The notes beneath the pieces were generated by a model, which saw only the letters and a program-made list of their open reading frames with translations, searched no databases and had not been told where the DNA came from. 64,000 nucleotides of DNA from positions 434,001-498,000 of the forward strand of contig CDRNST010000051.1 of the NCBI GenBank assembly GCA_977016875.1. The letters are read 5' to 3'. Source of the DNA: Pavona decussata (taxonomy: Eukaryota). The position numbers and the translations under genes were made by a program. This document shows, piece by piece, positions 17,350 through 64,000 of this stretch (positions are counted from its first letter, which is position 1; every line of letters begins with the position of its first letter).

Positions 17350-20300
17350 TCAACAACGGTCACTACACTCGATCGAAAACAACGGCTTTATAGGGATACG
17401 GCAGTTCGGTCCTTCCCAGCCTTCCAAGCACACTTTCCTTCCGTCACGTGGATCGCACGTGTAATGCCCGTGGACGGTGTCGTTATGCGGAACGCAGTAT
17501 TCACTGCAGTCGGGCCCATACCACCAGGGATTACACACTTTGATTCCATTGTCGGTGCATATGTACTGTGCTTCTTCCACGCTTCTATCCTCGTGCAAGC
17601 ATGTCAAAGAACAGTTGGGACTGAATCCGTGAAAGCCATCAAAGCAGACTTTGTTGCCGTCGTTATCGCACGCGTAATGGCCGAGTTCTTCATCGTCTTG
17701 TGGGACACAAAATACCGTGCACTTCTCGCCATGCCAGCCGTGCATGCACGTCTTACTTCCGTCAGGAGCACAGTTGTAATGTCCGCCATCGTCGTCGCGA
17801 GGAATGCATTGCGCACGACAGTCGCTGCCAAACCACGACGGTAGGCACTTTTTCATTCCATCTGAGAGTCTACATCTGTTGCGAGAAACAAAACGTCGCT
17901 TCAGTATGCGCGTGAATCTCTGTAAGAGTTCGCGGACAAACTAAGAGCACTTATTAGCAGCGTGTGCACGAGTTTGCTTTCCTGCGGTGGGAAGGTCTGC
18001 CCAAAATTATTTTGAATAATAACAAATCCGAAATTCTTTTCGGAGTACGACTGACACGTATAAAATACTTCGTGTAGTAGTGAAGGCCAGGCATGCGTTT
18101 TAGTACTGGTGCAAACAAAAGACGTACAGGAATCTGGCAGAATCAGAACATGTATGCCGTGAACCAGAGCCGCATGCGAGGGGTAGCCTGTGTGACAGTC
18201 CAACAGACATTTGGGGGAATATGGAAAGGAGATTAATTGATTAATGAATTTAAAGGGTGTCAGAATCTCAGGGAGGGAGGAGGTGGGGCTAAAGGCTTCA
18301 CATATCTCGACCCCAGTCAATTCTCTAACTCAAATCGGGATAAGGATTGTCACTGACACAGGATGGCGGGATGGATCAAAATCTAATGACTTACTTGTAA
18401 TGACCCAGCTCGTCGCTGTCCTGAGGCGCGCAATACGTAGAGCACCGCGAGCCAAACCAGTTTTTTACGCAGCTCTTACAAAATGGCCCTTGCCAGTTTC
18501 GCAGGCATCTCTTGTTTCCTTCCGTATCACAGGAGAAGTGTCCACTCTGCGGGTCATCCCGCGGGACGCAGTATCGAGTGCAGCTGCTTCCAAACCAACC
18601 AGGCCTGCAAACCTTTCTTCCCTCTTGATCACAAGTGTAGTGCCCGCTCGAGTCATCCCGCGGGATACACTTCACATTGCAAGCTGCACCGTAGTAATTC
18701 TTGTCACAGTACAACTCCAGCTCAAGTCCTACGCTAATGCGACTTGCAGTGAGCATCAGGTTTTTCCTCAGTGGACTATGAGATGGCCCTGGTCTGACGG
18801 AAGCTACTTTGATGTGCGTGCTTTCCACGAAGTCATCTCTTGTGTATTTGTCTTTATCCCAGACTTGCACGCCTATGGTAATGGTGCCCTGAAAGACGAA
18901 AAACTTTTTACTTAAGCTGCGTGATTTAAAATTATATTCGAGAGCATTTTGAGCAGACTTAACGGCTAGCCCTTCTGTTGTCTTAGACACATGTACAGTC
19001 GAGTAAAAACCTGAACAAGCACGCCGCTTGAAAGTTTCCGGTTGCGGTAAGATTTTCGCGTGTGCTTCCGAAATTATGTTACTTACCGTCTCGTGGGAAG
19101 CTGTTTCTCTCGACAGAAGGCACTTGAGACCGACAGAAGGCACTTGAGACAGGGACAGCATGAACAGACTCAAACAACGCGACGAACCAATCAAAACCGG
19201 CAAGGCAAAATTTCTACACCACGTAACAGATGAAAAGGACAGGAAACGTATTCAAGCCCTGTGAATCTCAAATCTGGGTCTTTAATCTGAATTTGTAGTC
19301 AGGATTTCTATTTGGGAGATCAAATCCAAACGCGAACCCGGACTTTAGTTTGTGTTGTTTTCAGAACACTTGCCATCGGTTGAGAAAGTGTGCGAGATTT
19401 TACGTTCATTAGCCAATCACACTACGAAGCAGAGTTAAATCAAAAGCGTTTATGAACAAACAAAACCGCTCTATGCACGCAATCACCTGAAAAGAATCAA
19501 AGGCAAACTCTCTCCTGATATTAATGTTGTGATGGTTGTCATTATGTCCAACCACCCCTGTCTGGCTTCTTCCCAAGTTACATCTGCGTGTAGAGCCGGA
19601 CCCTGACTGCGTCACGCACAGCTTAAAGTAGGCGTCGCACGGATAGCAGCGGCCAAAGTTAAACATCAAGTGGTCGCAGCATTTTCCATTGCTCATACGA
19701 TGGGTCGGGTTTCTGTAGCTTTTGAGGGTGATCACTGCTCGCCCCGTTCCTTCACAAGGTACCTGTTAAGCACAAAGATAAACGTTTGAGATGTCCATCC
19801 ACGCTCCACGCGTGCGCTGCTTTCGCCACGCACGTTGGACGGACGGTCGGGTAAATCTTTTAATACTTTATTATCTCTCCGCCATGTTCCTCTTGGCTTC
19901 TACCCTTTGGATGTTATTTTTTACCATTTTCTATCCTCGTTGCTTTGGATTCCTCCTATTTTCCGAGTTTCAAAAATCCCTCAACGAAGTTACCAGTTTA
20001 ATTAATATTTGGAACCTTCAGCTTCTTAGGGTTAATCCGAACATTTTCCTCTCCATTGTCTTTTGTTTAAAACAAAAGAACAATTGTTATTTAGAATTTT
20101 TCAGTATATTAAAGAAAAACAATCGTAAAGTACAATGGTCACATTTTGCAAGACTCGTAAACAAATGTGACTGCGGTTTTTCTAATCGTCTGACAGTGCC
20201 TCGATAACCAATTCAAAGACGGGTGTTAAAAGCTCGGGTAACGAAGAGGGCGGAAGATCTTCTGCCATTCTTTACTGAAGTTTTTTTCAGTGCAAAACGA

Positions 20301-22336
20301 TTTTGAATAAAGGAAACAGAAACCTTGTTAGCTTTTAATCTTAAAAAAGTGTTAGCTTGGGATTTAACACGAGTAAAAATTTGTAATATGTTTTACCCTG
20401 CCCCTTTTCTGGGAAATCACGCGATTCCGAGCAAATTTTAAGATAACCTTATCCGCCTTCGCTTTGTTTGAAAAATGCCTCCTCCTCCTCCTGTTTTTCT
20501 TTTAACAATAGGAACAACATGCTCTTGTGATAATTCTTAGGTAAATGGTAGACAGCATGTATTTTGTCTAGTACATGCTGAGGCTGGTTTTCGAAATCGC
20601 CGAAAGACAGGTAACTTGAAGATGTGTTTGTAACCTTTGAGTACGAGTATGACAATTCAAATGAACTATTGAGCATTACTCAGTTCCTGTGCTAACTTGG
20701 ATGAAATCCTAAAATATGACCATTCAAATGAAAGCTGCTGAGCAGCACTTCCCTGTTGTGCCGTGTTTATTATATTGTACAAGGTGGCTCTAACTTCCGA
20801 GTCTGTGGATGAAATCCTAAAGTGTGACCATTCAAATGAAAGCTACTGAGCAGTGCTTTCCTATGGTGCTGTTTATTGTGCTATACAAGATGACTCTAAC
20901 GTTTGAGACTGTGGATGAAATCCTAAAGTTTGACCATTCAAATAAAAGCTACTGAACAGTACTTTCCTGTGGTGCTGTTTATTATGCTGTGCAAGGTGGT
21001 TCTAACTTTTGAGTCTGTAGTTGAAATCCTAGAGCGCGATCATTCAAGTGAAAACTTTTCAGCATCACTCTCCTGTGGTGCTGTTCATTATGCTTTTCAA
21101 AAAGACTCGTGAATCTAACGTTCGAGTTTGTGACCATTTACAGAAAGCTCCTTCTCAGTTTCTGCTAGTAATGTTGCATTTGTATTTGATTTTTTTTATC
21201 TTCTCTTTCTTTTTCTATGCATGGGTAGTGTATCCCCGTATAATTTTCAAATTAGTTTTTATTAATAACTACCGGTCAATCTAATCTGGAAAAAAAAAAG
21301 GCTTACTGTTAGGGTCGGAGAAAAATTACCTCGTTTCGCTTAGACGCCAGACCAGGTATGACGGATTTGAGCAATGAAAAAAAAATTACATGTTCGTGGT
21401 GACTACAGCTATCCGATCACGTACAGATATTTAAACTTCACTTATTTCCTTGTCCCCAAGGGGGGAAGTGGGCCGGAAACGTACATATAACGTTTGTCAG
21501 TAAATTTTATGAAAAACCTTTCACTTTCCAATCTCTTGCTTTGTTCTTATTGGGAACAATAGCACTTAGATGAATCAAACACTCTTATGACCACTTTATA
21601 AACTTTTCGTGACCGCCGCATGCAAACAATAGAGGCCGATAAGCTTGTGCACCTCTATCAAAGTAAACAAAAACTCGTGTCCTACGTATACCTACCCCAC
21701 TTGAAACATTTGTAGAACCAGTAAGTAAAATGAGGAAAGGGTTTCTTTTCCTGCGCCCAAGTAATAGCCGAAGACATGCCTTGGTCCCTAATACCCATCC
21801 CCTGATTCACCCTGTAGTCTCAGCAAATCTCCTCACTAGGAACCTCCACCCCCACCCCCACGATCTCTACCATCAAATTCCCGTAGGTCCGGTAATGGTG
21901 AAGGAAGCTCTAAGATAAATTTGTTTTTTATTTGGAAAAATAAAGACAATATTGCCTCTAAACTTGCTCAGCTGGTGACATGCATATTGAGCAGATTAGG
22001 CACCGTCGGGTTGAAAAATATCTGCACCGTTGATAAGTAGAAATCGTGAATAGAGTGTGACAATGGCTTACGTATTCAATACCGAGGTTTGTTACGTATT
22101 TTCTTTTTACCAAGTTATACGTATAGTGTATGCGGGCTAGGGAACGAAACTGAGAAATTTGGCGGTTTCTTCTTCTGATAAAACAGAAAAATTAAGACCA
22201 GCTAACATGCGTTAAGGCAAGGGAGCATACTTCGTCTCGATTGCTTTCATTTGAACGATCACAAGGGTTAAAAGCGAGACGTACTTACCATGAAGCACAT
22301 GGAGAGAACAGTTGCGCTGACGAGCGACAGAAGCAT
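17350..22336 (-). CDS. Secreted Delta-like protein: signal peptide, C2/MNNL domain, 7 tandem DSL-like units, no EGF and no TM (~447 aa)
   Basis: Exons 22289-22336 (MLLSLVSATVLSMCFM), 19487-19762 (LKSYRNP..NGKCC..CDAYFKLC), 18395-18888, 17350-17875; phases 0/0/2 are consistent; DSL consensus [43 protein letters not shown]. Confidence 0.88.
20650..21135. repeat. ~106-bp tandem satellite, about 4 degenerate units
   Basis: Repeats of gatgaaatcctaaagtgtgaccattcaaatgaaagctactgagcagt..ggtgctgttt..ctaactttgagtctgtg. Confidence 0.85.
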
Positions 22337-24335: not shown

Positions 24336-27300
24336 TCAGTTCTTACTTTTAATCAGACAATTTAGCCCTTCCCAGCCGGCCTTGCACACTCTGCTCCCAT
24401 CACGTGTATCACACGTGTAATGCCCGTGCATGTTGTCGTCATGAGGCACACAGTACTGCCGACACTCGGGTCCATACCACCACGGCTTGCATTGCATGAA
24501 TCCATCCTCAGTGCAATCGAAGTTACCTAGCTGGGTGGAGTTATTGCACGTCAGTGAACAATTGGCTCCGTATCGACCTAGCAGACAATCTCTGCAGTCC
24601 GGGGGTCGGTATCCATCTAAGCACACTTTGTTGCCATGGATATCACAGGTGTAATGCCCTCGCATGTCATCATCTCGGGGAACACAGAACACCGTGCAGT
24701 TCTCACCATACCACCCATCTTTGCACATCTTACTTCCGTCATGCGCACAGGTGTAGTATCCGTTGTCATCATCCTCGTGAGGAATGCAGTGCGAACGGCA
24801 TTCGGCCCCAAACCACCACGGTAAGCAATCTTTCTTGCCATCGGCGGGCCTGCATCTGTCACCCCAAAAAAATGCACCAAAAATGTCAAAAAGGGGTTCA
24901 AAATATCATGGGTTGTCCTAATTTCCCAGTAGTGAGAAATCATTATTTTCCAAGCCCAAACTGATCGTGATGACCAAAGTGACTGGCCTGTCGTTTTTCT
25001 AACATCAGACCCATGATCATCATTTCCATACATTGACTAATCGGCGTAAACATTTCATGTAGTTTTCAAAGCTTATCGAAAAAAAAAATGGTAATTGCTC
25101 ATAGCGTATGTAAACACAACATTGGCTTCTGTTACGCTGTCAGAATTATCTTGAGCGACAGCTGAGGAAGGACAGTTTGAATGCCAAAATTAGTGACAAA
25201 CGTTAGACCACTTGAGAAGACCCTCCAAGAGTCGAAGACTCTAGATCTAATTTTAAACACCTCAGAGTTTCATTAGTATCGATGGCAGTACAAATTCGCT
25301 CTAGTTGAGCCACTGTTTCCATTAGCTCGCGTGCGTTCTTCTCTACGCATGCTTTAAACTGTAAACTGATCATTAAGTTAATGCGCTCTCACTTACTTGT
25401 AATGTCCTTGCTCTTCACCATCCTGAGGTACACAGTATGTAGAACAGCGTGGACCAAACCAGTTTTTTACACAGCTCTTGCAAGATGGCCCTTGCCAGTT
25501 TCGCAAACATTGCTTATTTCCCCATTTATCACAGTTGAAGTGTCCATTCCAAGGGTCATCCCGCGGGACGCAGTATCGGGTGCAGCTGCTTCCATACCAA
25601 CCATCCCTGCAAATCTTTCTTCCCAGATAATCGCAAGTGTAGTGCCCGCTCGAGTCATCCCTCGGGATACACTTAACAGTGCATGAATCACCGTAAAAGT
25701 TTTCGTCGCAGTACACCTCTAGATCAAGGGTTAGTCTAACGCGTCTTCCTCTCAGCTCTTGACGGCTTCGGTAGTGGGACGATACGCCGGGTCTTACAGA
25801 AGGAAGCGTCACGTACTTCTCGACGCGCTCCACAAACTCATCGTTAAAAATTCTGTCCTTGTCCCAAACTTCCAGCCGTAACTTGATGTTGCCCTGAAGC
25901 AAAATTTAACAAAAATTTATGGGGGCTTTTAGAGGTCCGTAGGTAGTTTCTGTTTTCTTATAACGAGAACGATTTACTCGGCCTTGCTCGGATGCAAGAA
26001 CAAATATTTTGTCAGCATGATGTAGAAAAAAGAGTGGTTTGCAATTGATTGTTAAAACTGATTTTGCATTTGCTTTGGTTTTACTTTACTACACATTGTG
26101 ATTGGTTAAACACCATTCAGTTCCTTAACCAATGAGAAGCAAAACAAACTGAAACCCAATAGTGGATTGTCATATGTATTTTCCCGCGTTACATGTTCTA
26201 GCTCAAAATTTTGATTGGTCCAATGCGCTGACTTGCTTCTTTCGTGATTGACCAGAGAAAATATTTTGGGGTTTGATTTTACCATGATAACAAGCTCAAT
26301 TGTTGTTATATAATTATTAATGAAACGATCTTTTCTGTGCACTGCGAATGAAATCAATTTACATGCAAGACTCGTGCAAGTGTCTCACGAAGTGAAGCGA
26401 GGAACTTCATCAGTTTTGTTATGTTAATTATTATATTTTTTTACTTATTAATAAAAGACAACGCACCTACCAGTGTTTTCTTTTAAGAATAAGTTATTCG
26501 TTGAGTTGATTTTACGTCCTTGTTTTTTGTCCCGTAATGGCAGCTGATGCACTATACCTTGACTCATGAATAATTTATAATTTGAATTAAATTCTGAGTA
26601 AATTAATATAAAGTTTACAGCTGATTTAGCGAGGGAGTGAATTCAGCCCACATTACGATAACTCGTTCATTGCGCATGCGCGCATTCACGAGTTAAAAAG
26701 GGACCGAGTGTGTGCTAAGAATTCAGGGTGAGAGATAACTTGTACAACTCGTGTCTGGAGTATCTGTTCAGATTAGTAGTTAATGTTGACCACGTCAAGA
26801 AACGTTCAGTACATTACTCATTTGTCCTTCTTTTAGATGAAGCATTTATGAGACGAGCTAAAGACAGGGTTGAGAAAGGCTTATCATTAAATTGAAAAAT
26901 TGGTTGGAAGCGTCTGCATATGTATACATGGCATGCTGCATGCCGCCTGAACAAAGGTCGTAACCACGCTAAGGATAGGAACTGGAATGTACTTACAGCA
27001 AACGATTTGAAAGCAAAGTCCTTCCTGATGTTAATTGAGTTGTGATTGTCCTCTTTTCCAATTACCCCGGTCGTAGCTCGTCCAATATTGCAGTCGGAGC
27101 GTGATGCTGAGTCCGTCACGCACAGTTTAAAGTAAGCGTCACACGCTGAGCAGCCAATGAATTTGAAGTCACAGCAATCTCCGTTGCTTTTACGATGTGT
27201 CGGATTGCTGTAACTTTTGAACGTGACGACTACGTGCCCCGTGCCTTCACAGCTCACCTGTTGAGATTCAGAACAGTGGTCAAGTAAGTTGTTACACGAG

Positions 27301-28498
27301 TCAGGACAGTTAGCCTCCACAAATTCCGACACAAGGAATTAAAGCTTAGAAAAAGGACAAGCCTGCGTATCAATCGGCCCGACAGAAACTCAAGCGCCTG
27401 TATTACAAGCTCGTGAAGAACACGCGCGGTATTGCAAATAAAACGTGTGGAGTGACTAAGGAGAGTTGGACTGTGGATTTGAGAGGCTGACGCGCGAGAA
27501 TCCACGTTTTCCACTATTCGAGGAACGGACTAAATTACCCCGCGGGAAGAGACCCGTCTCTAGAGTATTCAAGAGTGCCTGCTGGACCCCACCCCACTAG
27601 GTAGTCCCGATTCCCGCCAAGATTTTTTTTTTGCCTTGTGCGATCCTAAATTTCCTTACTAGGCCTAACGCTCAGAAGGAATTTCATGGGTTCACTTAAA
27701 CATACACTGCAGAGTTAATTATCTGTTTCATTGTGTCATTAGTTCTAGCGGCACAACATTCATTGTATATTTTTTAAATCCAGAGTTACATTCAATAACT
27801 ACCAATGGAAAACAAGACAGATCAAGAAAATTCTTCATGCTTCATGCTAGAACAATCTTATTTAAGTATTAAACATGATCTAAAATTAACATACTTTCTT
27901 CTTTTATCCTCTTTTATCCTCAAATGCGTGACATCTGTTGAGCCAAACCAGTGCAGTAGGCCTGGCTAGCTTTGCACTACTAGGCTGGTATTGCCATATT
28001 TTGCAGGATATGGCCCAAAGGAAAATGGCGGTAATATTTCAAAGTGGTTATGTTACTGCATTTAAGTCATTGAGGATCGGCAATCATCTTCCTAACTGCA
28101 AAAATTTTGATTTCAGTGTGCAATTACATAGGGCATTGCCAACCTTGCCTGCCTATCTGTTAGCCTTGTAATTGCCGCCAAGTCCCCTACCCACCCCCAA
28201 TTCTTAAATCACTCACTCCCCCAGAAAATTCCAGCATTTTTGGAACGAGTGAGAACAATTGAAAGCTTTATACTCTCTCGGTTTATTAAAAGTGATCATT
28301 GAATGTTTTAACTGGAAATTAAAGGTGCAGGAACTTTAACCCGCTCAATCTCTTTTCAAGAGCAGCGTTCAACTTCTAACTGAAGGGAAAAAAACACTTT
28401 TCATAAAAAATTGGACTTTAGACAGACCGAAGCAGGTAACCGAATACACTTACCACAAAGAACAGCAAAATAGCAGCTGAGGTGACAAATGACCACAT
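24336..28498 (-). CDS. Secreted Delta-like protein, paralogue 2: signal peptide, C2/MNNL domain, 7 DSL-like units (~440 aa)
   Basis: Exons 28454-28498 (MWSFVTSAAILLFFV), 26997-27257, 25397-25893, 24336-24855; same intron phases as paralogue 1; a possible A|GTAAG donor near 24346 could add a short 3' exon. Confidence 0.87.
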
Positions 28499-43400: not shown

Positions 43401-43479
43401 GATTATAGTGACAACGAAAATTATTTACTGCATCTGTGACAACCAGTTGGATCTCAGGGCCTTTGAACGTGGATTCGGG

Positions 43480-48459: not shown

Positions 48460-48718
48460 AGCGAGAAAATGATCAAATAATTTACGCCGCGTATTAGTCA
48501 AGCTTCTCTAACGTGTACGCTTAACTTCATGACCTATCGCTTTTAAAGTCTGGGGTGGAGTCGATTCTAAGGGATTGTTTGTAGTTACAGCAGGTGAGAT
48601 GAAAGGTGTTCAAACATATCAAAGCAAGGCAAAGAAAGTGCAATATTCCTACTTATTAAAACCTGGATCGTTGTATAATGCAATTCCAGGGATTTGATTG
48701 GCTTAGCGGCCATAGTAT

Positions 48719-51486: not shown

Positions 51487-52630
51487 ACATTTATTTCAAA
51501 TAACTTATTACGAGTTCGGCGTGAATTGGTAAGATTCATCCGGCCACTTAATGGTTCAATTAAATATTCCTTTTAAACGGACGGGGCAATATTTTCTTGT
51601 ACTAGAGCTAATCATGTTATACAAAACAGTGATTCTTTTACTTCCCAACCCTCGGATCAATCGCGCGTTTGCTTTGATTCTGGTTGTTAAAGCTTTTAAT
51701 ATAGTGGCTTCACAAAAGGCAACGCGCTCTAGCCACTTGACCTGACCTGGCGAGTGGCCTCTTTTTCCCGCTTCGCTTTGCATGGATCGAGTTCCTGTTT
51801 CTCCTTCTTCACGTTGTGATTGGCTCATTTCGGTGTCTATGTTGTGCGCAGGTGTATTGTGGCTTTTGACTGCCCTTCGATTTCTTGCATTTAGCTAATC
51901 AGACGGAACAATTACAAATCGTCAACCTAACTATTTTCAAACGAGGTAAAAGTCAAAAGTAATCAATTTATGTTTTTTGCAATTCTGCGACTGCTGTCCG
52001 TTTACTTAATTCACACTCTTTTGAAGTTTTTGTTATTTCGTCCTATACATTGTTTTGAAGCTTTACTTCAATTTAGTCCAGGTACTACAACATAAATAAA
52101 CTGTGTTTTGTTGCGCTATGCAAAGTCCTTTTAACCTTTTAGTCCTTGGAAGGCAACCGCTGAGCTGATATACAGAGGATTCGAGTTGATTTATTTTTTA
52201 TTTATTCTGTGGTGTTTTTGTTTTCAATCTCTTTTAAAACAATTTTTCTTCAAACTTTTTGAGCCAAAGGGAGCACGTCATCTTGCGTGAGGTTTTTATT
52301 GTAAAGTTTTATTCCATGTTTAAAAGTTCCAAGACTATTTTGTGTTAAGTGACAGAAAGTTTGAAATGGCATGACGCAGATCGCGAGTTAAATTCATTTG
52401 ATATGTGTATTTATGGGTATATTCAATCCAAATTGAGCCCTAAATACAACAAATTTATTGAGGCAATAATGAAGGGAATTAACTCCTTATTACTTCATCA
52501 TTTGGTGGAAAGAATGAGAAAACATGATCGTAGGTTAGTTGTCAAAAGCACTCGGAACAAAAATATTCAATTTTTTTCCTTGTTTCTGAGTTCGCGTAAA
52601 ATGAAAACTACAAAGAAAACCGCGTAAAAG

Positions 52631-53145: not shown

Positions 53146-54826
53146 AGCTAAAGTGAGTCATGGTCAGCGGCTGTTGTTTTTACTCAACAAGATTCAAAAT
53201 GGCGGGAAAGATGAATGAGCTTGTTTGGTAAAATAATAAAGACAGGCCAAACACGGCTCCTACTGGTCGAGATAGGAAGAACATGACCTTCAAAGCTAAT
53301 TTGCTCTTACGAGTACGTCTCTCAAAGATCTCCCTTTTCTGTACGAAAGTAGAGAAGGGTCTTTGTAGATCTCTCTTCGCAGAGGTTGATTTTCTATGAA
53401 GTGTCATTTACCAGGAGCCATAATCAGGGATAGAGACCGTAACGAGATGCCATTTTGACTTGTGGGCTTGTCCCCTTCTGTTGTACCAAAAAATCTATTT
53501 TTAGAAAAAATGGCGCCATACGCGCGTGCGAGCACGCGTGTAAACGGCCAGGATCGCGCGTGGAGAAATTGAAATTTTTTTCTACGCGTTCAAAATGGCG
53601 TCCAAATTTTAAAATTCTGCCATGGAATATCTCCTCTGTGCCCACATTTAAGGAATTATACTCTCACAAAGAAAAGGTAACAATTAAAAGAAGAGGGGGA
53701 AAGTTGGAATGAGCGGCCTATTGATTACATGACTCTCACAGTAAAGTCAAAAAGGCGCCAAAAATTATTTACTGCATCTGTGACAACCAGTTGGATCTCA
53801 GGGCCTTTGACTGTGGATTCGGGGTGATAAACTGATTACTAACCGTGCGGGAGGTCGCGGGTTCAAACCCCGGCCGCACCACCACTCGGGGTCTTTCAAA
53901 TAACTGAGGAGAAAGTGCTGCTTTTGTTCTAACATCTGCAAATGGTTAGACTTTCTAGTTTTCTCGGAGAAGGACGATAAACCATAGGCCCCGTCTCACA
54001 ACCCTCGTTTATAAAGAACTCTGTGGGACGTTAAAGAACCCACACACTGTTCGCAAAGATTAGGGAACGTAGTTCCCGGTGTTGTGGTCTGGTCTTCTTG
54101 TGTATACTCTCATGATTGGGTGGGTAGATGCTTGGAGATATTAGCTGCATAAGCTACTCTTAAATTGGAGGGTAGATAAAGATATGATGACGAACCTATC
54201 GCACTTGCTTTGCCTTTCGTCATCGCTTTTCCACATAATTTGTCTATCTCTGCCCGAACGGTACGAATTTGGTCATCACTGAACCTTTAGACAAGACCCA
54301 ATCAAGTAGCTCAAGATGAAGATCAAGAAGCCTCCCAGGAAGCTGTTTTTAGGGGAGTGCATTACCCTCTTCCCCACAAAGAGGAGAGGCTAACAAAATG
54401 TCGAGGAATAAACCCTCCGTTGATATATTGTCTCGTCCAGAGGGAGTATAGTAAGATACCCCTGGTAGATTCATCCCTTAGGCACCATTGGTTGGATGTC
54501 GAGTGCACAGCCACGTGCTTGGTTCGTGAAGACGTTGTCTATCTGGCTGCAACTGCAATTTACTATTATCTACCCACTGTCGGGGGAAAGTTTTCGCGCA
54601 CTTTATGGAAGGACGAAATGCTTACGAGCTTCGCAAGTGATTGGCATATGTCTGGCCGATAAACTGGTAAGCGATGCTAGTCCGAGTCTCTAACAAACTA
54701 CAGAAACAAACTCTTAACAGTCCGCTTTATTTGTTTCTCATTACAAGCAACAGATTAACCTTGGTTCACATTGGTGACCTAGTGTTGGTGTCGGCCCCAG
54801 TTATTTCCCTACTGGCCTCCAACCAC

Positions 54827-56923
54827 CTACGCCTCCTGGACGCCATTACAATACGAGCTCTTATTGAAACTTCCCTTAGCGACATTATTCCTGAAGTCGT
54901 TCATCATGTTTCCTGCCGGACGATACCGGCCCACTACGTAGGTACACCCTCTGGAGGTAGCTTTTCCCATCCCCAGTTTTACACTCTTCTTCCACACCAC
55001 CTGGGTAAAGTGTCCTGTGCCGGATCCCCATCCGGGATTGTTGAAATTGAACTTGCAAACTTCTTCATACCTGAGGGAAAGATGAACAAAAGGAGATATC
55101 TTCGCACCTCTCTTATGAATTTACCCTGTGTTCTAATCCTGTTAGATTGACAAAAGGAGATATCTTAGCACACCTATTCTGAATTTACCCTCTTTTCTCA
55201 TTCTGTTTCAAATGTGTGGTATACAACAGTCTCATATGAAGATGAGTTTTCATCCCGTCACATTGAAGTAGTAGAAACAGGCAGAAAAAAAAATGCAAAT
55301 AATAGTAGTCTGAAATGTCAGCCGTCTCCTCCACCTAACCCACAGGGGGCGAGCCCCTGTGGGTTAGGGGTAGGAGACGGCTGACATTTCAGACTAAAAT
55401 AATAGTAAAGGCGAAAAAAATACCAGATATTATAATTGTTTTTGTTAACTTAAAGTGGAAACAAGACAATAAACAAACAAATAAACGTAAACACGAACAA
55501 ATGCGATTTAATTTAATACTCATCATCTACCGCACGTAGATCGAAGACAGGATCAATCAATGAGGTTAGAATTCCTTCCAATCAATCAAACAAGCGGACG
55601 ATGGCTAAGGATGGCTAAAATCTCTGTGTATATGTCTTTTGTTCTTTTTTTAATCCATCAGATAGTCTTAACTTTCATTTAAGCAAACTCCAAGTACTTT
55701 GAATATCACAAGCTTGGAAATTGTTACCCAATTAGCTGTCTGGCTGTACACTGTCAGTAAACTTTAAATCCTTTTTCCAATTGACTTTTTTAAGAGCCCA
55801 TGTCATGGGTTCCTGGTTTTTTCTATCCAGTGCATGCAAGGCTATAGTACTCACCACATCTCTACAGCCTGCTGGGCCGAAAAGTCACGACCGCACAACA
55901 TAGCGAGATTCTCCCCCTGACCTGGTCTCTGACTGGGCCTCGAGTGCTGAAGATTTCCTCTGCGTGCCAGGCGCTTGGCATAAGCTGCTGCCTGCCGGCT
56001 CATACCAGAATCCAAACTCATACGCGGGGCATTGTGTATCCTGCGGTACTTATTATGTGCAGCTAAGCCATCTTCGTCGAAAGATCCTGAACAAAAAAAA
56101 GGGTTCCAAAAAAAAAAGGTTTCATATCATAGTCATGCCACTACAAATGCCCTTCTTTATATCAGTTGAGAACAGAATAATCTTTATTTCTTAAGTGACT
56201 ACATCGTGAGACAAACTATTCATTTATTTATTATCATTTTTGTTGTATGTATTTGCCTAGCTCCAGATTTCGGAATTGTACTTTTTACGTATACATGAAT
56301 TATAGTTTATGCCAGAAAACTGTTAGGGAAGCTGGCGAAAAACGCTTTCGTCTAGGCAGAAGGAGCACTTCTGGACTAAGTCATTCACTGTTAAATCTAG
56401 CGATTTACGGTTGCTGTTAAGTGACTCCGGGACACAAAGAAACTGGCTGCACCAGCGAGTAAATGACTAAAGCAAATGATGTGCAATGCTCTATTCCTAA
56501 AAGGAAAACTGATTCAAAAGGCATCCTCCAAAAATACGTGTACTTTATCTTACCATGAACTTTGTCCAATCCTCCTGAAAAAGAAAGAGATGTGCATGCG
56601 TCATGATCATCAGAAACCAATTTCTTTCATAAAAATGACTCCGACATTATGACAATGAAATTGAAAAATAACCCTCGTCTCATGCATTCAAGATGAAAAC
56701 AAATCAATGAAGAAAGTTGTTTCTCCTTTCTCTCTCAGTGTTAGAAACCGATTTCCACACCGACTGACCAATTTACCGTTTCGTTTTCTTTTTAAATTTA
56801 CGTACAAACATACCCTTACTGACCAAAAATGTGTCACAATTAAGTGCTAATTTAAAATCAGAATCTCGTCTCACCAAAGATGCACAGCATCCCCAAAAAC
56901 AGAAGGGTAACATTAGAACACAT
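54827..56923 (-). CDS. Secreted single-domain CAP/SCP protein, paralogue (~181 aa), Gly-rich tail lost by frameshift
   Basis: Exons 56875-56923 (MCSNVTLLFLGMLCIFG), 56554-56574, 55855-56086, 54827-55070 (ends YCNGVQEA*); CAP motifs intact. Confidence 0.83.
55306..55396. mobile_element. 91-bp hairpin MITE with 9-bp TSD
   Basis: aaataatag|tagtctgaaatgtcagccgtctcc..ggagacggctgacatttcagacta|aaataatag; empty site near 45024. Confidence 0.9.
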
Positions 56924-59739
56924 ATCGAGAAAATGATCAAATAATTTACACCGCGTATTGGTCAAGCTTCTCTAACGCGTACGCTTAACTTCATGACCTA
57001 TCGTTTTTAAAGTCCGGGGTGGAGTCGATTCTAAGAGATTGTTTGTAGTTACAGCAGGTGAGATGAAAGGTGTTCAAACATATCAAAGCAAGGCAAAGAA
57101 AGTGTCATATTCCTACTTATTAAAATCTGGATCGTCGTATAATGCAATTTCAGGGATTTGATTGGTTTAGCGGCCATGGTATATGAGCCATTATACCATG
57201 CCCGAGAAATAGCGACCATTAAATTGTCTTCTGGTTGTTCTTGCCAAGCGAAATCAGCAAGATCTAGCAATATTTCTTGATTGTTTTTAATAAAAAAAAT
57301 TATCCCACTCGCGCTTGTTGGCATGAGATGATTATAATTGTTAATTATACTCAGGTTCAATCTGTATTAACAATTGGATAACGGTAAAAATATATTCAAT
57401 CCAAGGCTATGATATCGTTTTTGAAGTATAGTGAATTTTACAATAGCATTCTGCTACCTGACCACTTTAATCCGAGTCGCTTAGAATCTGCCAAAAACAT
57501 TTTTCCAAAATTTCTTAAATTCTCACCTCAAAAATCTATTTAGAGAATTAAATGAACATTACTTCATGAGAAAGACATGGCTAGACGCTTGGCCGTTCTA
57601 TCTATCAACTTACAGCTCAGAGCTACGTTTGGTTATTTATGTCTTAGCGAAAAAGACAGAAACATCACTCATACATAGAAATTGACATATAGCAATAAAA
57701 TTCAAACCAAGCATTATTGATGTGGGACTAAGTAAAGAGAAAATTGCGTTTTGTTAGCAATTAAAGTTATACGTTGGAGCTACAAATATTTGCTTTCTCA
57801 GTTCCAGAACTGAAGTGTTATGTTCAGCTGTTCAGGTGGACAGCGGACTAAACCACGTGATTCACTATAATGTTTGTTTAGCTTGCCCACGCATGGTCAG
57901 AATACAGAAACAAATAATCGCATACGATATCTGCTGAAATAAGACTCCGCCTGATACTTAACAAGTGATTCTCAGTTAACAATTCAAAACCTTCTGGAAG
58001 GGGGGTTTAGAAATCCATAATCTTTAACTCAGACCTTATTGTCTTTCCTGTTATAGTAAACCCCCCTCTCTAATAAACCCTTTTTTCAGGTTTTGATCAT
58101 GTTTGATAACATTGCGCCTTTGATCTGCTTCTACTTTTACTCTAAAAGCTCCCGTTTTTTGTCCCTTTTTGGGAAACCATAAGTACTAGTTAATAAGCCC
58201 CCTCCTTTGGGGTTCAATGGACAGAATAGAGGTAATATATCCTGATATTTATCCACGATGCCCTTGGGAATCATACATGTACTCATCACAAATACAAACA
58301 TCAGGCATTTAGAGCAATTCTGACTGTTAAAGGTAACTTATTACGATTTCGTGAATTTGTAAGATTCATCCGGCCACGTAACGGTTCAATTAAATATTGC
58401 TTTTAAACGCACGGGGCAATATTTTTTGTACTAGAGCTAATCATGTCATACAGAACAGTGATTCTTTCTCGACTGATCCTCGAAAACCTCGAATTAATCG
58501 CGCGTTTGCTTTGATTCTGGTTGTTAAAGCTTTAAATATAGTGGCTTCACAAAAGGCAACGCGCTCTAGCCACTAGCAAGGCAAACATTTTGGCGTTTTA
58601 TTTTCAACCATTCAGGAGAAATCCAGCGACTTTACTTGGCGAGTGGCCTCTTTTCCCCGCCTCGCTTTGCATGAGGTTCCTGTTTCTTCTTCTTCACGTT
58701 GTGATTGGCTCATTTCGTTGTCTATGTTGTACGCAGTTTGTTTGTGATTAGACAAGTGTATTGTGGCTGGCGACTGCCCTTCAATTTCTTGCATTTAGCT
58801 AATCAGACGGAACAATTACAAATCGTAAACCTAACTATTTTCAAACGAGGTAAAAGTCAAAAGTAATCAATTTATGTTTTCTGCAATTCTGCGACTGCTG
58901 TCCGTTTACTTAATTAGTTAACTACATTGTTTTGAAGCTTTACTTCATTTTAGCCCTGGTACTTCAACATAAATAAACGGTGTTTTGTTGTGCTATGCGA
59001 AGTGATTTTAACCTTTTAGTCCTTGGATGGCAACCGCTGAGCTGATATACAGAGGATTCGAGTTGATTTATTTTTTATTTATTCTGTGGTGTTTTTGTTT
59101 TCAATCTCTTTTAAAACAATTTTTCTTCAAATTTTTTGGGCTGAAGGGAGCACGACATCTTGCGTGAGGTTTTTATCGTAAAGTTTTATTCCATGTTTAA
59201 AAGTTCTAAGACTATTTTGTGTTAAGTGACAGAAAGAAAAGTCTGAAATGGCATGACGCAGATCACGAGTCAAATTCATTTGATATCTGTATTTATGTGT
59301 TCAATCCAAATTGAGCCCTAAATACAACAAATTTATTGAGGCAATAATGAAGGGAATTAACTCCTTGTTACTTCATCATTTGGAGGAAAGAATGAGAAAA
59401 CATGATCGTAAGTTAGATGTCAAAAGCACTCGGAACAAAAATAGTCCATTTTTTTCCTTGTTTGTGAGTTCGCGTAAAATGAAAACATTGCATTGTAACT
59501 TCACCCGGATTTTGCTCAGATTGATGTCAATCAAAACGCATGCATGTTTTACATGCAAACAAGTTATTACACAAAAGAACAATCCTTCAACATTTCACCA
59601 GCAGGATGATTTTTATCGACTCGTGTTTGCTGTTTAGCAACTCAAAATTCCTAGGATGACTCTTGTTTGCTTACTGAATGTGAAAACTGAAAGAAATATT
59701 GACGCCTTGTATCCAGAGCCTCTGTAATCACGGATCAAG

Positions 59740-62700
59740 ATGTTCATAGCATACATACCTGTTCTTATTCTACTTATCTCGGTGAGTTTGAAAAATCGTA
59801 TTGTTCCAAAGATATATGTCAGGTTGAACTCAAAAACTAACATTTTCATTTCCGAATGCCATGAGCTCACAATCACTGAGAAAATTGCAAAACCTATTGC
59901 TGACTTGGGATCATTTCAATGTCAGGTTTTTAATTTTACAGTTATAATTACTGCAAATCTTCATATCGTTTGTTTTTTGCGTTAAATAGGCTGAGCACAA
60001 CATCTATCAGCAGGCTTAGTTTTACAAGCTGGCTTCCAGGGTACAGCCCCGAGTGTGACAGTAAATGAAAGCAGAAATTACGTAGTATAGATTTTTGTCC
60101 ATAAAACTAGCTGTCTTCTTTGCGTAATGTTTGAGTCTCGATTAAAACCTTTATGAGAGCTATATGGGCGATGTAGCACTGGATCTAGAGACGATCAATT
60201 GAGGTATTTAAATTATTAAACATGTTTTAAAGCAAACACACCATGAAACTTCATCATCTAATTTAGAAACGACATCATTGTTTTACACCTGTTCTTTACT
60301 ATTCATCAATTCTACAATACTGTTGCTTTACCATTTGCTTAGAACGAGAACGGACTGAAAAATTCATCTCACTGCCCTTCATATAATGATGTAGCGTTAC
60401 CACATGGTATCGTATAGATAACGTCATTACTGTGTAGATAAACAACATAATTGCAAGAAATTAAAAGTGAACAGGAGTGAATTTGTCGTGATATTGCGTG
60501 AAATTATCCCAGTCTATGTACTAGTCATTTCCATGACCACTTTTTCCCACTGATATTTCAATTTTCTTCTGATTTCTGTAACAATGCCCTCTCTGCATGG
60601 TGGGTACCATTTTAGTTTCCACGAGTCCAACCCACTGAAAGTTTGGATTTCTCGTTCCTAGCCAGTGTTTGACATTCACGGCTAACCGTTGTAATGGAAG
60701 GGGTAGTACTGACCGGGAACTTGGTCAACAATATAAGGCTTGGAATAAATGTGATGGAATATCAGTTTAAGCCTGGTGAATAAATGAGAATGATGTATTA
60801 TTCAGTAAGTGACACAGGCATACTTGCAAAAAAAAAATCCGAGTGCTCCTATCAGGAGTCGAACCTAAGACCCTCCGATTACTAGTTCGGACGCTCTACG
60901 GCTGAGCTACAGGAGACTCGTGGGAGCTAAGGCCATTAAACTAGGTTCATGGGATAAACATCCTGCATACTGCAAGGATTGGAATGTCATGTGTGGCCTA
61001 TGCGCGATGGAATAAATGTGATGGAGTATTTTAAGCCTGGTGAATAAATGAGAATGATGTCAAGTGACACAGGCATACTCTTTTTTTTCAAGTATGCCTG
61101 TGTCTCTTACTGAATAATACATCATTCCCAAAATAAGGCTTGTCACGTTCCGATTTGGGAAACTAAAAGGTGCTAAAGGCTAACTTACCAGTAACTATTT
61201 ATCCGCCCAATTCAAAAAATCTGTTGCGCCAGGTTTTTCATCTTGTTTATAAATCGGACCGATTATATTTTCATGAGCTCACTCATTTTCTTTGTCAAAT
61301 GGAGCCAAATTGGCCCAATTAATCGGTACGTGTAAATAAACCTTAAAAGAAACTATAATATAATGAGGGAAAAATTGGAGAAAGGACAAAGTGCTCCCCT
61401 AAACCTGACATGATTTGAGCTCTTGGAACATTGGAAAGTCTGGAAAGGCATGATGCTAATTAATCTTTTTGAAGTGTTTATTCCGAGTAATCGGAATACA
61501 CACTATTAATGATCAAGCATCTTCATTTGGTGTTCATAACTAAACTGTCCGAGAAATTGTGATGTCATGTAAGTGTGACGTTCTCTTAAACTGTTTTTCA
61601 ATTTGTGACATTCAATTTCAGGACCGCTGCAAAGGCTGGGGGATGTTATCGCTAAAACTGGTTAGCTACAAAAACCCAGAGAGTAAACTGTTCAATGGTG
61701 AATGTTGTGATACACCTTCGTGGTGTGGCGTAAGTCCGTGTGAGAATTATTTTAAATTCTGTGTGACGTCACTGGGTTCCTTGAAACCGTGTCACCTGGG
61801 TTACAGAAAGACCAAAGTGCTTGGCGATGATGACTTCCGGTTTCCTGAAGTTGGCGCCAGCCTGGGGACTAATTTGTTAAATCCACTGACTTACAACTTC
61901 TCTTACTGGNNNNNNNNNNNNNNNNNNNNNNNNNNNNNNNNNNNNNNNNNNNNNNNNNNNNNNNNNNNNNNNNNNNNNNNNNNNNNNNNNNNNNNNNNNN
62001 NNNNNNNNNNNNNNNNNNNNNNNNNNNNNNNNNNNNNNNACAACTTTGATTGGACTGACTGGTTCAATCTTGATACATTCAGAGCAAACATGTCTTCTTC
62101 CATGTTTCAACGGCCGAGTAAAGCATTACCAACTAAAACAATCGGCAAGACTAAACCTACATTTGGCAATGGGTTTTCGACCTGTGATTAGTTCATTGTA
62201 TTATTTTAATAATTGAAGAGTTTTGGGATGCCATGGCTGGTTACTATATAAAAGGATGATTGATCTTAGATTGATCTTAGAAACTGCTCTCAAAAGAGCC
62301 CTAACGCAGTGATGACACTAAGTAGTTCTTGCTTTGGTGATTTTTAAAAGGGCTTGAATTTTTCATTTGCCTTGTGGGGGTTTTGGTGGCAACTGAGTGT
62401 CGTGAAAAAAATTCAATCAAAGTTGACCCTGGCCAATTACAACAAACACCAACTACACAATAAGCCAATGAATCTAAATACGAAATAAATGCATGTCATA
62501 TAACAGGTGCCAGGATCAGCTGGAAAACGCGTGAGAGTGAGTCTGCCATTAGTTTTGATTTTACTTGTAAGCGGATAGAGAAAGCGAGTTCGAGTTCTTT
62601 GGGATAAAGATAAACCTAAAGTAAGCACGAATTGTCGGCATTCAAATGATAACCGCTAGCTCTAACATATGTATAACTTAATCCGTTCCTATTTTCCAGG

Positions 62701-64000
62701 GAAGCACTGTTGTGGTGGAGGTGGGGGATGATGACGGCTGTCATATTATAGGAGCCCTCCACGATTTCGTCGACAAGTATACTTTAACGCTAAATCAGTT
62801 ACAATCTGTTTATTCTTATGCAAAATCGTCGATTGACGGTACAGAAAAGCTCTGTGGCAAACGATCATGCATGACCATAAGTGTCACGCTATACTGTGGT
62901 CCTCACTATCTGGTGCCGGACTGCCGTACGTATTGTGTGTCACGCAACGATAGTTTTGGTCACTAGCAGTGTAACTACACTGCTGGACGTAAAATATGTA
63001 ATGAAGGGTGGTACGATCCCATCACAAATTGTTTAAAGAGACGTAAGCTTTGTACTCCCAGGAATGACTCCTTGTGACATTATAACTGCGATTCTTCCAG
63101 CGGAGAAAAGTTGTGTTAAGACGGGTGGACAGGGGATAATTGCACGGAAGGTGTGTAGCACTTGTTAACGTCACGATACAGTTAGCATATTGTGCTCTTT
63201 GCTAAGCCAAGGTTACCGGCGTCATTGTTTATTTATCTGTTTGTTTTGAATCACACTGCATGTGCGCATGTTTGTTCAAAAAAGACGTCCATTGAAGCTA
63301 CACATACAAAAACGCAAGTTTTTCACTTTTTGGCTGATGGACGTGAATTCATTGACGTAACAGCCTCCGCAAACAAAGAAACTTTGCTGCTTACTGCTCC
63401 TTATAATTTTCATCTGATTGCTCGCGCACGTCCTAAAGCAAATTTTCCTTTCGCAAAAAATGCTTCGCTGAACGCACTCAAACGCGTACAGGGATCAATA
63501 AGGCAGACAAAAAAGGCCTCGGTAGCGAAGAACTGTGGGTTTTGTTGTTTAAGTAGCTCTTCAATTTCAGTGCAAAGGTCAATGTTTAATAGAGACTGAA
63601 ATTCTATGTAACAGCCGTGAAGGTTGAAATAATTTTCAACACTCTCTAACAAACCGACCAAAAGGTTAAATAAGATTTTCATTTACTTTTCAGCTTGTTC
63701 TTATTCACCTTGTCATCAACCGACAATCCATACCCACGAAAGTACTATTGTGGTATTGGCAACGACAGTTACACCAGTTTCCACACCACATGTAGACGTT
63801 GCGATATCGTCAACAAATCCGTCAACCATTGATTTCCCTACAAGTCAGTCTACCGCGCATTACTTTATGACATCTTCATCTATTAGCTCGGTTTTAAGGA
63901 CATTTTCTGAAACAAAGCCCCACAGTTTACTTTACTTCACACCACATTCGTCGACTCTTCTATACGGCTTCCAAACCCAAACGCTACGGTCAATAGATTC
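59740..64000 (+). pseudogene. Delta-like C2/MNNL + 2 DSL units + Ser/Thr-rich stalk with three in-frame stops; runs off the window
   Basis: Exons 59740-59781 (MFIAYIPVLILLIS|GTGAGT), 61622 to gap (LVSYKNP..NGECC..CENYFKFC..LLNPLTYNFSYW), 62700-63150 with TAG 62964, TGA 63075, TAA 63117, and 63694 to beyond 64000 (open, S/T-rich). Confidence 0.82.
60744..61128 (-). mobile_element. Second tRNA-containing permuted element (tRNA-like core 60844-60916) with an inverted terminal arm
   Basis: Reverse-complement homologue of 50314-50644; gaataaatgtgatgg repeated at ~60744 and ~61010; inverted aagtatgcctgtgtc..atacatcattc at 61090-61128. Confidence 0.75.

Follow-up and report, generated by a model that had tools for sequence, protein, structure and literature searches.

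The stretch of DNA analyzed here (the window, 64,000 nucleotides of Pavona decussata) carries within positions 17350-64000 four neighboring paralogues, which we call A, B, C, and D. A, B, and C are located on the minus strand and D on the plus strand. A sequence-only reading had interpreted them as Notch-ligand-like genes, in which a C2/MNNL head is followed by tandem DSL units without any EGF repeats. This raises the question of what kind of genes they are and whether their products act on Notch. Our data leave very little doubt that the cluster consists of conserved anthozoan RDSL genes, which are derived from Notch ligands. Repeated-DSL genes of Nematostella were listed as an oddity by Gazave 2009 (PMC2770060, Additional file 7) and the family was named RDSL (Repeated Delta Serrate Ligand) by Yoshioka 2020 (PMC7850063). 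Thus, the family is not new, and the suspicion that multi-DSL proteins had already been noted in cnidarian surveys was correct. They had been listed but not characterized, and we found no functional study of RDSL in the literature searched.

Domain composition of the cluster

For our searches, we used single exons or natural orthologue proteins, and N stretches were left as gaps. The splice junctions of the gene models are all canonical (GT-AG). When we searched with Pfam, the MNNL exons of all four genes scored above the cut-off of 22.5 bits for PF07657 (A 41.0, B 34.6, C 27.5, D 49.5 bits). DSL matches (PF01414, cut-off 24.2 bits) were found in every gene and the strongest one was obtained for C (E 5e-120). 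PF00008, hEGF (PF12661), EGF_CA (PF07645), and EGF_DL_JAG (PF21700) yielded no match on any exon of A-D. EGF families were present in the Jagged-like and Delta-like loci of the same genome, in the mollusc Delta P0037, and in the canonical-type protein P0149. The Teneurin-EGF model EGF_TEN (PF25024, cut-off 65 bits) was exceeded in C alone, with 85.6 bits versus 392 bits for DSL, and it reached 30-40 bits on A and B, which is below the cut-off. A Teneurin-type EGF array is therefore not the best explanation of the repeats.

These data confirm the basic architecture proposed by the sequence-only reading, and its numbers of DSL units (A 7, B 7, C 15, D 2) agree with the Pfam stretches. The MNNL motif xSYxNP..NGxCC..CxxYFKxC, which had been ascribed to all four paralogues, was recovered in A, B, and D, but C has its own reading of it. 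Similarly, A and B clearly have the signal-peptide exon that had been proposed for all four genes, and C has a good candidate (40339-40407), but when we looked for such an exon in D, none was found.

The DSL units are interlocked. They follow each other with a period of about 34 residues, while the domain itself comprises 45 residues (15 matches in C, spacing of about 102 nt). In Jagged-1, the DSL disulfides pair consecutive cysteines, and the loop C1-C2 superimposes on the loop C5-C6 (PMC3415683). In the arrays of A-D, the last disulfide loop of each DSL unit doubles as the first loop of the next one.

Genes A and B

The exons of A and B are as follows:

22289-22336, minus strand: A exon 1, signal peptide MLLSLVSATVLSMCFM, donor GTAAGT; matches the N-termini of the orthologues P0010 and P0012
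19487-19762, minus strand: A exon 2, N-terminal half of MNNL/C2; Pfam MNNL 41 bits; colinear with positions 177-451 of the related mRNA L053
18395-18888, minus strand: A exon 3, C-terminal half of C2, DSL1, DSL2, and start of DSL3; Pfam DSL in 3 stretches, E 4e-33; colinear with L053 444-944
17350-17875, minus strand: A exon 4, rest of DSL3 and DSL4-7, stop codon TGA at 17350-17352, no TM; Pfam DSL, related mRNA
28454-28498, minus strand: B exon 1, signal peptide MWSFVTSAAILLFFV, donor GTAAGT
26997-27257, minus strand: B exon 2, N-terminal half of MNNL/C2; Pfam MNNL 34.6 bits, splice sites
25397-25893, minus strand: B exon 3, C-terminal half of C2, DSL1-2, and start of DSL3; Pfam DSL E 6.5e-29; related mRNA L054 417-920
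24336-24855, minus strand: B exon 4, DSL3-7 with the B-type insert GYRPPDCRDCLLGRYGANC, stop codon TGA, no TM; Pfam DSL, splice sites, related mRNA

In both genes, the DSL stretches detected by Pfam are split 3 + 4 over exons 3 and 4, which gives seven units each. The stop codon directly follows DSL7, and there is no hydrophobic tail or TM behind this unit in either gene. Full-length spliced A-/B-type transcripts of several corals end at the same place and continue with a long 3' UTR. Two of the four genes had been described as lacking any TM, and this holds for A and B.

These transcripts also bear on the possibility that the cluster is an artefact, either a canonical Delta/Jagged gene with missed EGF/TM exons or a mis-assembled repeat. 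The Nematostella genes of Gazave 2009 were partial models, for which the authors left mis-assembly open (PMC2770060), and two assembly gaps are present in the region studied here. Against this stands that the A-/B-type transcripts of related corals end behind DSL7 and that assemblies from no fewer than seven anthozoan species, made independently of each other, show the same architecture. Moreover, we found no Cys-rich frames downstream of A or B, and the canonical Jagged-like and Delta-like genes of P. decussata sit on other contigs. The probability of such an artefact is negligible.

Gene C

For gene C, the following exons were modeled:

40339-40407, minus strand: C candidate exon 1, 23 residues, donor GTACGT; good signal-peptide candidate, predicted from sequence
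37073-37351, minus strand: C exon 2, N-terminal half of MNNL/C2; Pfam MNNL 27.5 bits, splice sites
34443-36186, minus strand: C exon 3, C-terminal half of C2 and 15 interlocked DSL units; Pfam DSL 392 bits, 15 stretches, E 5e-120
33603-33855, minus strand: C exon 4, S/T-rich stalk, in-frame TAA, then a 22-residue TM helix
33259-33429, minus strand: C exon 5, juxtamembrane cytoplasmic tail; acceptor 33429 picked by homology to P0034 and P0008
32373-32517, minus strand: C exon 6, tail with EDGSRQIDDHLVMYNNPLF (NPxF motif), stop codon TGA

C encodes a type-I membrane protein, in which 15 DSL units are combined with an S/T stalk and a tail that contains NPxF, and it carries a premature TAA in this assembly. 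Its exon 3 shares 61% identity with Oculina P0001. The sequence-only reading had assigned stalk, TM, and tail to one gene, and exons 4-6 of C provide these elements, but the in-frame TAA (33698-33700) is located 11 codons upstream of the TM helix. In related transcripts, this position is occupied by Q or R. Because the stop codon precedes the TM helix, C may be a null allele in this assembly.

A Pfam search of the stalks and tails yielded no domain. The TM forms of corals, Nematostella, Exaiptasia, Dendronephthya, and one EukProt cnidarian have the tail motif NP[LF][FY] in common. NPxY/F motifs are typical of endocytic and phagocytic receptors, whereas the tails of Delta and Jagged use Mib or Neuralized.

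In C-type arrays, units 1-2 keep RDD/HDD, and 7-8/15 later units carry N-D-S/T. About half of the units of C have a predicted NxS/T sequon on that face of the DSL domain that binds Notch in Jagged-1. The earlier description of the family as multivalent DSL proteins is doubtful in view of these sequons and of the interlocked 34-residue modules.

Long repetitive rods, S/T-rich stalks in C and D-type proteins, the many sequons on C, and the Teneurin-EGF match of C above its cut-off (85.6 vs. 65 bits) would also be consistent with structural proteins, in which the DSL rods serve as stiff, disulfide-rich, and glycosylated spacers in matrix, mucus, or adhesion without any signaling. We consider this scenario quite improbable. 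Conservation of the C2 head and of the cytoplasmic motif argues for specific recognition and trafficking, and A and B are small proteins (about 445 residues) with a unit number that is constant across species, unlike expandable matrix repeats.

Gene D

Gene D and the two assembly gaps are located as follows:

46895-47026, no strand: assembly gap, intergenic between C and D, inside a duplicated CAP-like block; touches no exon of the DSL genes
61622-61909, plus strand: D MNNL exon, frame intact, runs into the gap at 61910; Pfam MNNL 49.5 bits
61910-62039, no strand: assembly gap inside gene D (end of the MNNL exon, donor, part of the intron)
62700-63152, plus strand: D exon, C-terminal half of C2 and 2 DSL units, pseudogene
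63633-64000, plus strand: S/T-rich open frame, probably the mucin-like stalk of D; a stalk of this kind is present in P0047 and P0051, which are intact D-type relatives

The MNNL exon of D is 95% identical to P0038, which goes on with ..SYWQ and then a donor. Since the gap begins right after ..NFSYW, the sequence of about one codon and of the donor site is missing. D is probably continuous across the gap at 61910-62039, as judged from strand, order, and phase only. Its two DSL units contain three in-frame stops (TAG 62964, TGA 63075, TAA 63117), and when these were read through, PF01414 matches of 36.9 and 39.3 bits were obtained. The S/T-rich frame extends about 440 nt past the end of the window, and a TM-like frame (L031) is also located beyond it. 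D is a pseudogene that belongs to a fourth conserved subtype (C2, 2 DSL, mucin-like stalk, TM), in agreement with the decayed paralogue that had been described. When the C-terminal part of Oculina P0001 was compared with the D-type stalk, the similarity was not significant (E 0.1).

Conservation, phylogeny, and synteny

Spliced mRNA contigs of related corals are colinear with exons 2-4 of A, 3-4 of B, and 3-6 of C, and dN/dS values of 0.12-0.34 were obtained. Together with the transcripts, these values support the proposal that soluble (A, B) and membrane (C, D-type) forms belong to a real family under constraint. We found orthologues in Oculina, Desmophyllum, Montipora, Actinostola, and Nematostella, and related poly-DSL TM proteins in Exaiptasia and Dendronephthya. 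The octocoral TM form is probably a relative of C.

In a tree calculated from the C-terminal half of C2 and DSL1, A and B form a clade with support values of 97/99, and C groups with Nematostella P0003 (89/97). At its deep nodes, this tree recovered neither monophyly of RDSL nor a sister ligand. D formed a long unplaced branch, and P0007 was not placed relative to A/B.

In Nematostella, a C-type gene is located 12.6 kb upstream of a secreted gene in the same orientation as in P. decussata, and M20 peptidase neighbors are common to the P. decussata cluster and Oculina. A, B, C, and D represent four subtypes that are old and conserved. They have orthologues in other corals, and C occurs in anemones as well. 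The earlier characterization as a lineage-expanded birth-and-death family was therefore overstated.

Relation to Notch ligands and possible function

When A exon 3 was compared with solved structures (phmmer), we found the best agreement with Jagged-1/2 (E 1e-20 to 3e-21) and weaker matches (to about 1e-10) with the C2-DSL structures of DLL1, Serrate, and Delta. DSL1 of A is close in sequence to that of Jagged-1. The AF2 model of the A-type orthologue P0012 had a pLDDT of 80 and exceeded 90 through the DSL array. In a Foldseek search of the PDB with this model, the best 24 matches were all C2-DSL-EGF structures of Notch ligands (E 1e-16 to 3e-21). The next matches were C2 domains of cPLA2, E-Syt, and perforin (E about 1e-6 to 1e-7).

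The Notch-binding face of Jagged-1 involves F199/R201/R203/D205/F207. At these positions, DSL1 of A and B has K,I,R,D,S and that of C has Y,V,R,D,T. Thus, R203 and D205 alone among the five residues are kept in A, B, and C, and S or T is present at position 207. The canonical ligands of the same genome have Q,V,R,D,L (Delta) and F,Q,R,D,F (Jagged-like), and since its own canonical Delta also deviates at face residues, this five-residue comparison does not discriminate.

Decoy, clustering, and recognition roles, as suggested by the sequence-only reading, are candidate functions. In the explanation that we prefer, each protein would consist of a signal peptide, a C2/MNNL head, and a rod of DSL units alone. 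Because the membrane-distal C2 + DSL1(-DSL2) module keeps the architecture of a Notch-binding head, it is predicted to engage Notch-type EGF receptors and/or membranes. The secreted proteins A and B are unable to pull on a receptor, so they would act as soluble modulators or competitors. C would be presented on a long, probably N-glycosylated rod and might be internalized through NPxF. Taken as a whole (a Notch-ligand-derived RDSL cluster, a head acting on Notch-type receptors/membranes, A and B as soluble modulators), we regard this explanation as reasonably probable. That the RDSL head engages Notch itself is a more tentative suggestion, for which sequence and predicted fold argue. The EGF1-2 DOS region, which contributes to Jagged/Delta binding, is absent from A-D, and this counts against a Notch mechanism. 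The NPxF tail, which appears unlike those of Delta and Jagged, would count in the same direction.

These observations lend themselves to another reading outside the Notch system. Here, the C2 head would sense lipid or cell surfaces (apoptotic cells, microbes, symbionts), C and the intact D-type proteins would serve as receptors for endocytosis or phagocytosis and act via NPxF on PTB adaptors (CED-6/GULP, Dab, Numb), and the secreted proteins A and B would be soluble bridges or blockers. Such a system would resemble Draper/MEGF10 in its working but not in its family. The NP[LF][FY] tail has been conserved in Hexacorallia, in Octocorallia, and in a EukProt cnidarian, the fold of the head is that of a C2 domain (matches to cPLA2, E-Syt, and perforin given above), the hydrophobic Notch contacts F199 and F207 are absent from DSL1, and predicted sequons are located on the DSL face of many C units. 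In addition, a separate Notch-ligand-like cluster of Acropora, which was compared by its description only, responds to native symbionts (PMC7850063, PMC10584924). Nevertheless, we consider this reading rather unlikely. The head is nearest to true Notch ligands and not to other C2 proteins, R203, D205, and the entire DSL1 scaffold have been retained under strong constraint, and Pfam detected neither an EMI domain nor any other phagocytic-receptor domain in A-D. The more far-reaching idea that RDSL is a cnidarian surface-recognition/uptake system, which was built from Notch-ligand parts and handles symbionts, microbes, or dying cells, is still less probable.

In cnidarians, Notch plays a role in neurogenesis, cnidocyte formation, budding, and regeneration. 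The Notch gene of P. decussata was also located (C196), and its EGF11 and EGF12 are encoded on two exons (L047). Recent surveys of the cnidarian Notch pathway omit the ligand-like genes described here (PMC12166595, PMC10970066). Binding of the secreted forms to Notch would make them naturally occurring soluble modulators in an animal of an early-branching lineage, and it would mean that a ligand head had been transferred to a new scaffold. Without such binding, the C2-DSL module would have been reused for another kind of recognition. Since there are clear orthologues in Nematostella, where knock-downs are routine, the function of RDSL is directly testable, and the checked gene models, the four subtypes, the conserved tail motif, and the Nematostella orthologues are provided here.

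Comparison with known systems

The canonical ligands (Jagged-1/2, DLL1, DLL4, Serrate, Delta) resemble A-D in the sequence and the predicted fold of C2/MNNL and DSL1, and C and the D-type proteins share with them the type-I membrane topology. However, canonical Delta/Serrate/Jagged proteins have EGF repeats and a DOS motif, whereas A-D instead carry 2-15 interlocked DSL units. There is one DSL in the canonical ligands, but DSL1 of A-D is trailed by 1-14 more. Canonical ligands are bound to the membrane via a single-pass TM with a tail. In contrast, A and B are secreted, the TM of C is located behind the TAA, and D is decayed. The canonical tails carry Mib/Neuralized-binding and PDZ motifs, whereas NPxF is found in the tail of the RDSL TM form. 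Finally, DSL1 of A, B, and C lacks three of the five residues of the Jagged-1 face.

On paper, Draper/CED-1/MEGF10 share with this family a long Cys-rich rod, a single TM, and an NPxY/F tail. The automatic NCBI name of the Nematostella C-type gene (P0003) is 'protein draper'. Membership in the Draper/CED-1/MEGF10 family was ruled out, since there is no EMI domain, the repeats are DSL and not EGF or laminin-EGF, and the head is the C2 domain of Notch ligands.

The secreted DSL ligands of C. elegans have one DSL and one EGF and show no orthology to A-D. To our knowledge, they possess neither an MNNL head nor repeated DSL units. DSL-1 and its relatives resemble the RDSL proteins as soluble DSL proteins without a DOS motif, and they are a precedent for the action of a secreted DSL protein on Notch (PMC2504490, PMC3415683).

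The AnNLL genes of Acropora (aten_s0035.g8-g10) form a tandem cluster that is up-regulated with native symbionts. Their best Swiss-Prot matches are Dll4 or jagged-1b, and they fall outside canonical Delta and Jagged. According to the authors, they do not cluster with RDSL, and Hint is their only Pfam domain (PMC7850063, PMC10584924). A-D differ from AnNLL, as far as its description goes, by very strong DSL and MNNL matches.

The closest agreement is with RDSL as listed by Gazave 2009, which has a DSL-only ectodomain with or without MNNL and without EGF, and A-D match this architecture. The genes 212534 and 212543 of Additional file 7 correspond to P0003 and P0007. Nemve1|212534 (P0003) groups with C and also has a stalk, a TM, and an MYNNPLF tail. 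It is located upstream of the secreted 212543 (P0007), just as C is located upstream of B and A. The RDSL papers of 2009 and 2020 contain neither the four subtypes nor the split into secreted and membrane forms, and synteny, tail motif, and sequon pattern are likewise absent from them. New here are four conserved subtypes, a synteny of C with a secreted gene that is common to coral and anemone, the conservation of NPxF/Y in the tails of the TM forms, and the sequons on the DSL face of about half of the units of C.

Domain content and gene models

A six-frame scan of the window recovered the C2/MNNL motif of the sequence-only reading in three exons, together with a series of long cysteine-rich frames. 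The four neighbouring genes were modelled as follows (window coordinates).

Gene A, minus strand, GT-AG junctions: exons 22336-22289, 19762-19487, 18888-18395, 17875-17350
Gene B, minus strand, GT-AG junctions: exons 28498-28454, 27257-26997, 25893-25397, 24855-24336
Gene C, minus strand, GT-AG junctions: candidate exon 1 40407-40339; exons 37351-37073, 36186-34443, 33855-33603, 33429-33259, 32517-32373
Gene D, plus strand: 61622-61909, then a gap, then 62700 to ~63152

Every junction is GT-AG and the phases are concordant among the paralogues. In the Pfam search (cut-offs 22.5 bits for MNNL, PF07657; 24.2 bits for DSL, PF01414; 65 bits for Teneurin-EGF), MNNL scored 41.0 bits in A, 34.6 in B, 27.5 in C and 49.5 in D. 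DSL stretches numbered 3 + 4 in A and likewise in B, the single 1744-nt exon of C carried 15 of them (392 bits, E 5e-120), and D has two units, which reproduces the earlier count of 7, 7, 15 and 2. No EGF, hEGF, cbEGF or Delta/Jagged-EGF model matched in A-D. The sole competing model, Teneurin-EGF (234 positions), passed its cut-off only on C, where its 85.6 bits lie far under the DSL score. Thus, the units score as DSL and not as EGF, as proposed for genes lacking EGF repeats. A signal-peptide exon shared by all four genes had also been proposed; MNNL is indeed present throughout, but this exon is only a candidate in C and our search for it in D found none.

All homology searches were run on single exons or natural orthologue proteins. 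Logan contigs of related corals hold uninterrupted coding sequences of A-type (L053, 443 aa on 2.8 kb), B-type (L054) and the 3' part of C-type (L052), and their blastn blocks end at the predicted splice sites for exons 2-4 of A, 3-4 of B and 3-6 of C. Because of transcript L052, the acceptor of C exon 5 was placed at 33429; the site offers two AG acceptors at a spacing of 6 nt (33423-33429, ..tgtacag/ttgcag/atcc..), and the upstream one, used in relatives' transcripts, adds Ser-Cys. Against related-coral transcripts, dN/dS lay at 0.12-0.14 (A), 0.14-0.34 (B) and 0.14-0.21 (C). The closest protein matches of the window come from the scleractinian corals Oculina, Desmophyllum and Montipora and from coral transcript contigs, one of which has a short piece 98% identical to the window. 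These observations confirm the cluster, and its genes are real.

Across the 602 Mb assembly, every poly-DSL match falls in this cluster; separate contigs carry Jagged-like and Delta-like genes, which have EGF exons. Two Delta-like genes ~21 kb apart (L034 and L035, G000:C210:182615 and 203838) carry a single DSL of RDSL-like type (YCDANYYGADCNTYCVGRDDS.GHY), RDSL denoting the repeated DSL genes of cnidarians. An EGF exon was seen behind the DSL of L035, and in the tree L034 joins the RDSL group and not the Jagged-like/Delta-like pair. In the Notch gene of this genome (L047, G000:C196:1278001-1288000, minus strand), the EGF best fitting EGF12 (..NPCLNGICLDYSNRFKCIC; numbering tentative) apparently has no O-fucose Thr ahead of its third Cys. 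A 4901-residue open frame at G000:C180:231143-233059 with at least 9 LNR (Notch, PF00066) matches is a giant LNR-repeat protein unrelated to the DSL cluster.

Phylogeny and gene order

Orthologues of the cluster genes were found in Oculina, Desmophyllum, Montipora, Actinostola and Nematostella, and related poly-DSL transmembrane proteins in Exaiptasia and Dendronephthya. The EukProt entry labelled GoldUCD, which we take to be Aurelia, is a further member. A and B, whose joint clade has support 97/99, are distinct lineages of old origin, both present in Oculina; C clusters with P0003 of Nematostella and with Actinostola (89/97) in a tree whose deep nodes are unsupported.

In Nematostella, 12.6 kb separate the transmembrane gene P0003 from the co-oriented secreted gene P0007 downstream of it, the same order as C upstream of B and A here. 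The C-type P0003 spans 25 kb and houses a 7tm_1 gene and core-histone clusters in its introns (OW051997.1, 2.24-2.30 Mb; L039, L038), with a further copy of the histone cluster in the interval between P0003 and P0007. The Desmophyllum model P0020 ('Protein jagged-2') is a chimeric prediction that omits several DSL units; it opens with a C-type tail exon (..VSWTEDGSRQVDDHLV) joined onto a B-type gene, which points to the same gene order in Desmophyllum as here. The Oculina cluster (L040, CM126638.1, 17.50-17.53 Mb) runs M20, M20, C(+), A(-), B(-), and is rearranged; its Peptidase_M20 (M20) neighbours are common to Oculina and the window. The window carries two tandem copies of M20 exons at 6493-15210 (minus strand; M20_dimer E 8e-15), seen as internal repeats 6502-7834 and 11516-12785, and two M20 genes flank the Oculina cluster too. 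A 1929-residue Oculina model beside the C-type P0001 seems to fuse A and B.

Membrane anchoring and the state of genes C and D

A and B have neither a TM helix nor a hydrophobic C-terminus suggestive of a GPI anchor, in agreement with the proposal of two paralogues without any TM. For C, predicted to have stalk, TM and tail, the helix and tail exons are intact, but an in-frame TAA (33698-33700, exon 4) precedes the helix by 11 codons. At this position Q (P0034) or R (P0008) stands in transcripts of relatives; starting from the Q, one CAA-to-TAA change would suffice. Since the exons that follow the stop remain intact and under constraint (dN/dS 0.14-0.21), it is recent, heterozygous or an error. 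All TM forms compared (corals, Nematostella, Exaiptasia, Dendronephthya, the EukProt cnidarian) have NP[LF][FY] in the tail, a predicted signal for PTB adaptors and endocytosis. The Oculina C-type model P0001 has a long stalk and TM at its C-terminal end and no NPLF tail, and resembles the D-type stalk only weakly (E 0.1).

The suspected decay of D was borne out by TAG, TGA and TAA in frame within its two DSL units. In intact D-type relatives (P0047, 704 aa; P0051, 644 aa), a C2 head and two DSL units are followed by an S/T-rich stalk and a TM, and an S/T-rich frame of D and a TM-like frame lie beyond the window's end (L031). D itself is a decayed member of this conserved subtype. Gap 61910-62039 begins directly after ..NFSYW of its MNNL exon; in a close relative's gene call (P0038, 95% identical to this exon), ..SYWQ is followed by a donor, which leaves roughly one codon plus the donor unread in the gap. 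The exons on both sides are compatible by strand, order and phase, a fit that does not demonstrate continuity. A second gap (46895-47026), between the first exon of C and D, touches no DSL-gene exon; the adjacency of D to A-C depends on the scaffold join across it. It is enclosed by a segmental duplication (43417-52608 vs 53761-59486, 88-98% identity) containing CAP-domain (PF00188) ORF fragments, e.g. 45609-46262 (minus strand).

Structure and possible function

The 15 DSL matches of C cover ~45 residues each, with a mean start-to-start distance of ~34 residues (102 nt). Cysteines adjacent in sequence are paired by disulphides in the DSL domain of Jagged-1, whose C1-C2 and C5-C6 loops can be superimposed (PMC3415683). 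From this spacing and pattern we infer an array (loop A - loop B)n - loop A, in which each A loop belongs to two adjoining DSL units. When A exon 3 was compared with PDB by phmmer, it matched Jagged-2, Jagged-1, DLL1, Serrate, Delta and DLL4 (E 1e-20 to 3e-21 for Jagged structures, weaker for the others, to ~7e-10), with DSL2 aligned where EGF1 stands in Notch-ligand structures. For the A-type orthologue P0012, which shares 79-80% identity with A, the AF2 model has pLDDT 80 overall and >90 along most of the rod; its best 24 Foldseek matches were all Notch-ligand C2-DSL-EGF structures, followed by C2 domains.

Of the Jagged-1 face (F199, R201, R203, D205, F207), only R203 and D205 are kept in DSL1 of A, B and C; the canonical Delta of this genome deviates too. 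C-type arrays retain RDD or HDD at the face spot in the first two units. N-D-S/T occupies this spot in 7-8 of the 15 units of C and 9 of 15 in the Oculina C-type, but in 0-1 of 7 units in A and B. If these predicted sequons are glycosylated, the internal units of C would be spacer and not extra binding sites, which weakens the earlier idea of multivalent DSL proteins. We tentatively consider RDSL proteins as possible Notch modulators, the most probable reading but at less than even odds. A role in non-Notch recognition or uptake is less probable, and the remaining probability falls to a structural role or something as yet unconceived.

It had been suspected that such genes might already be noted in cnidarian surveys. 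The family is on record but was never characterised: we found no functional work on it in the literature searched, and poly-DSL genes are absent from reviews of 2024 and 2025 (PMC12166595, PMC10970066). Additional file 7 of Gazave 2009 (PMC2770060) lists Nematostella 212534 (P0003) and 212543 (P0007). Yoshioka 2020 (PMC7850063) gave the family the name RDSL and described AnNLL, the anthozoan Notch ligand-like genes of Acropora, as a separate tandem cluster that is induced by native symbionts.
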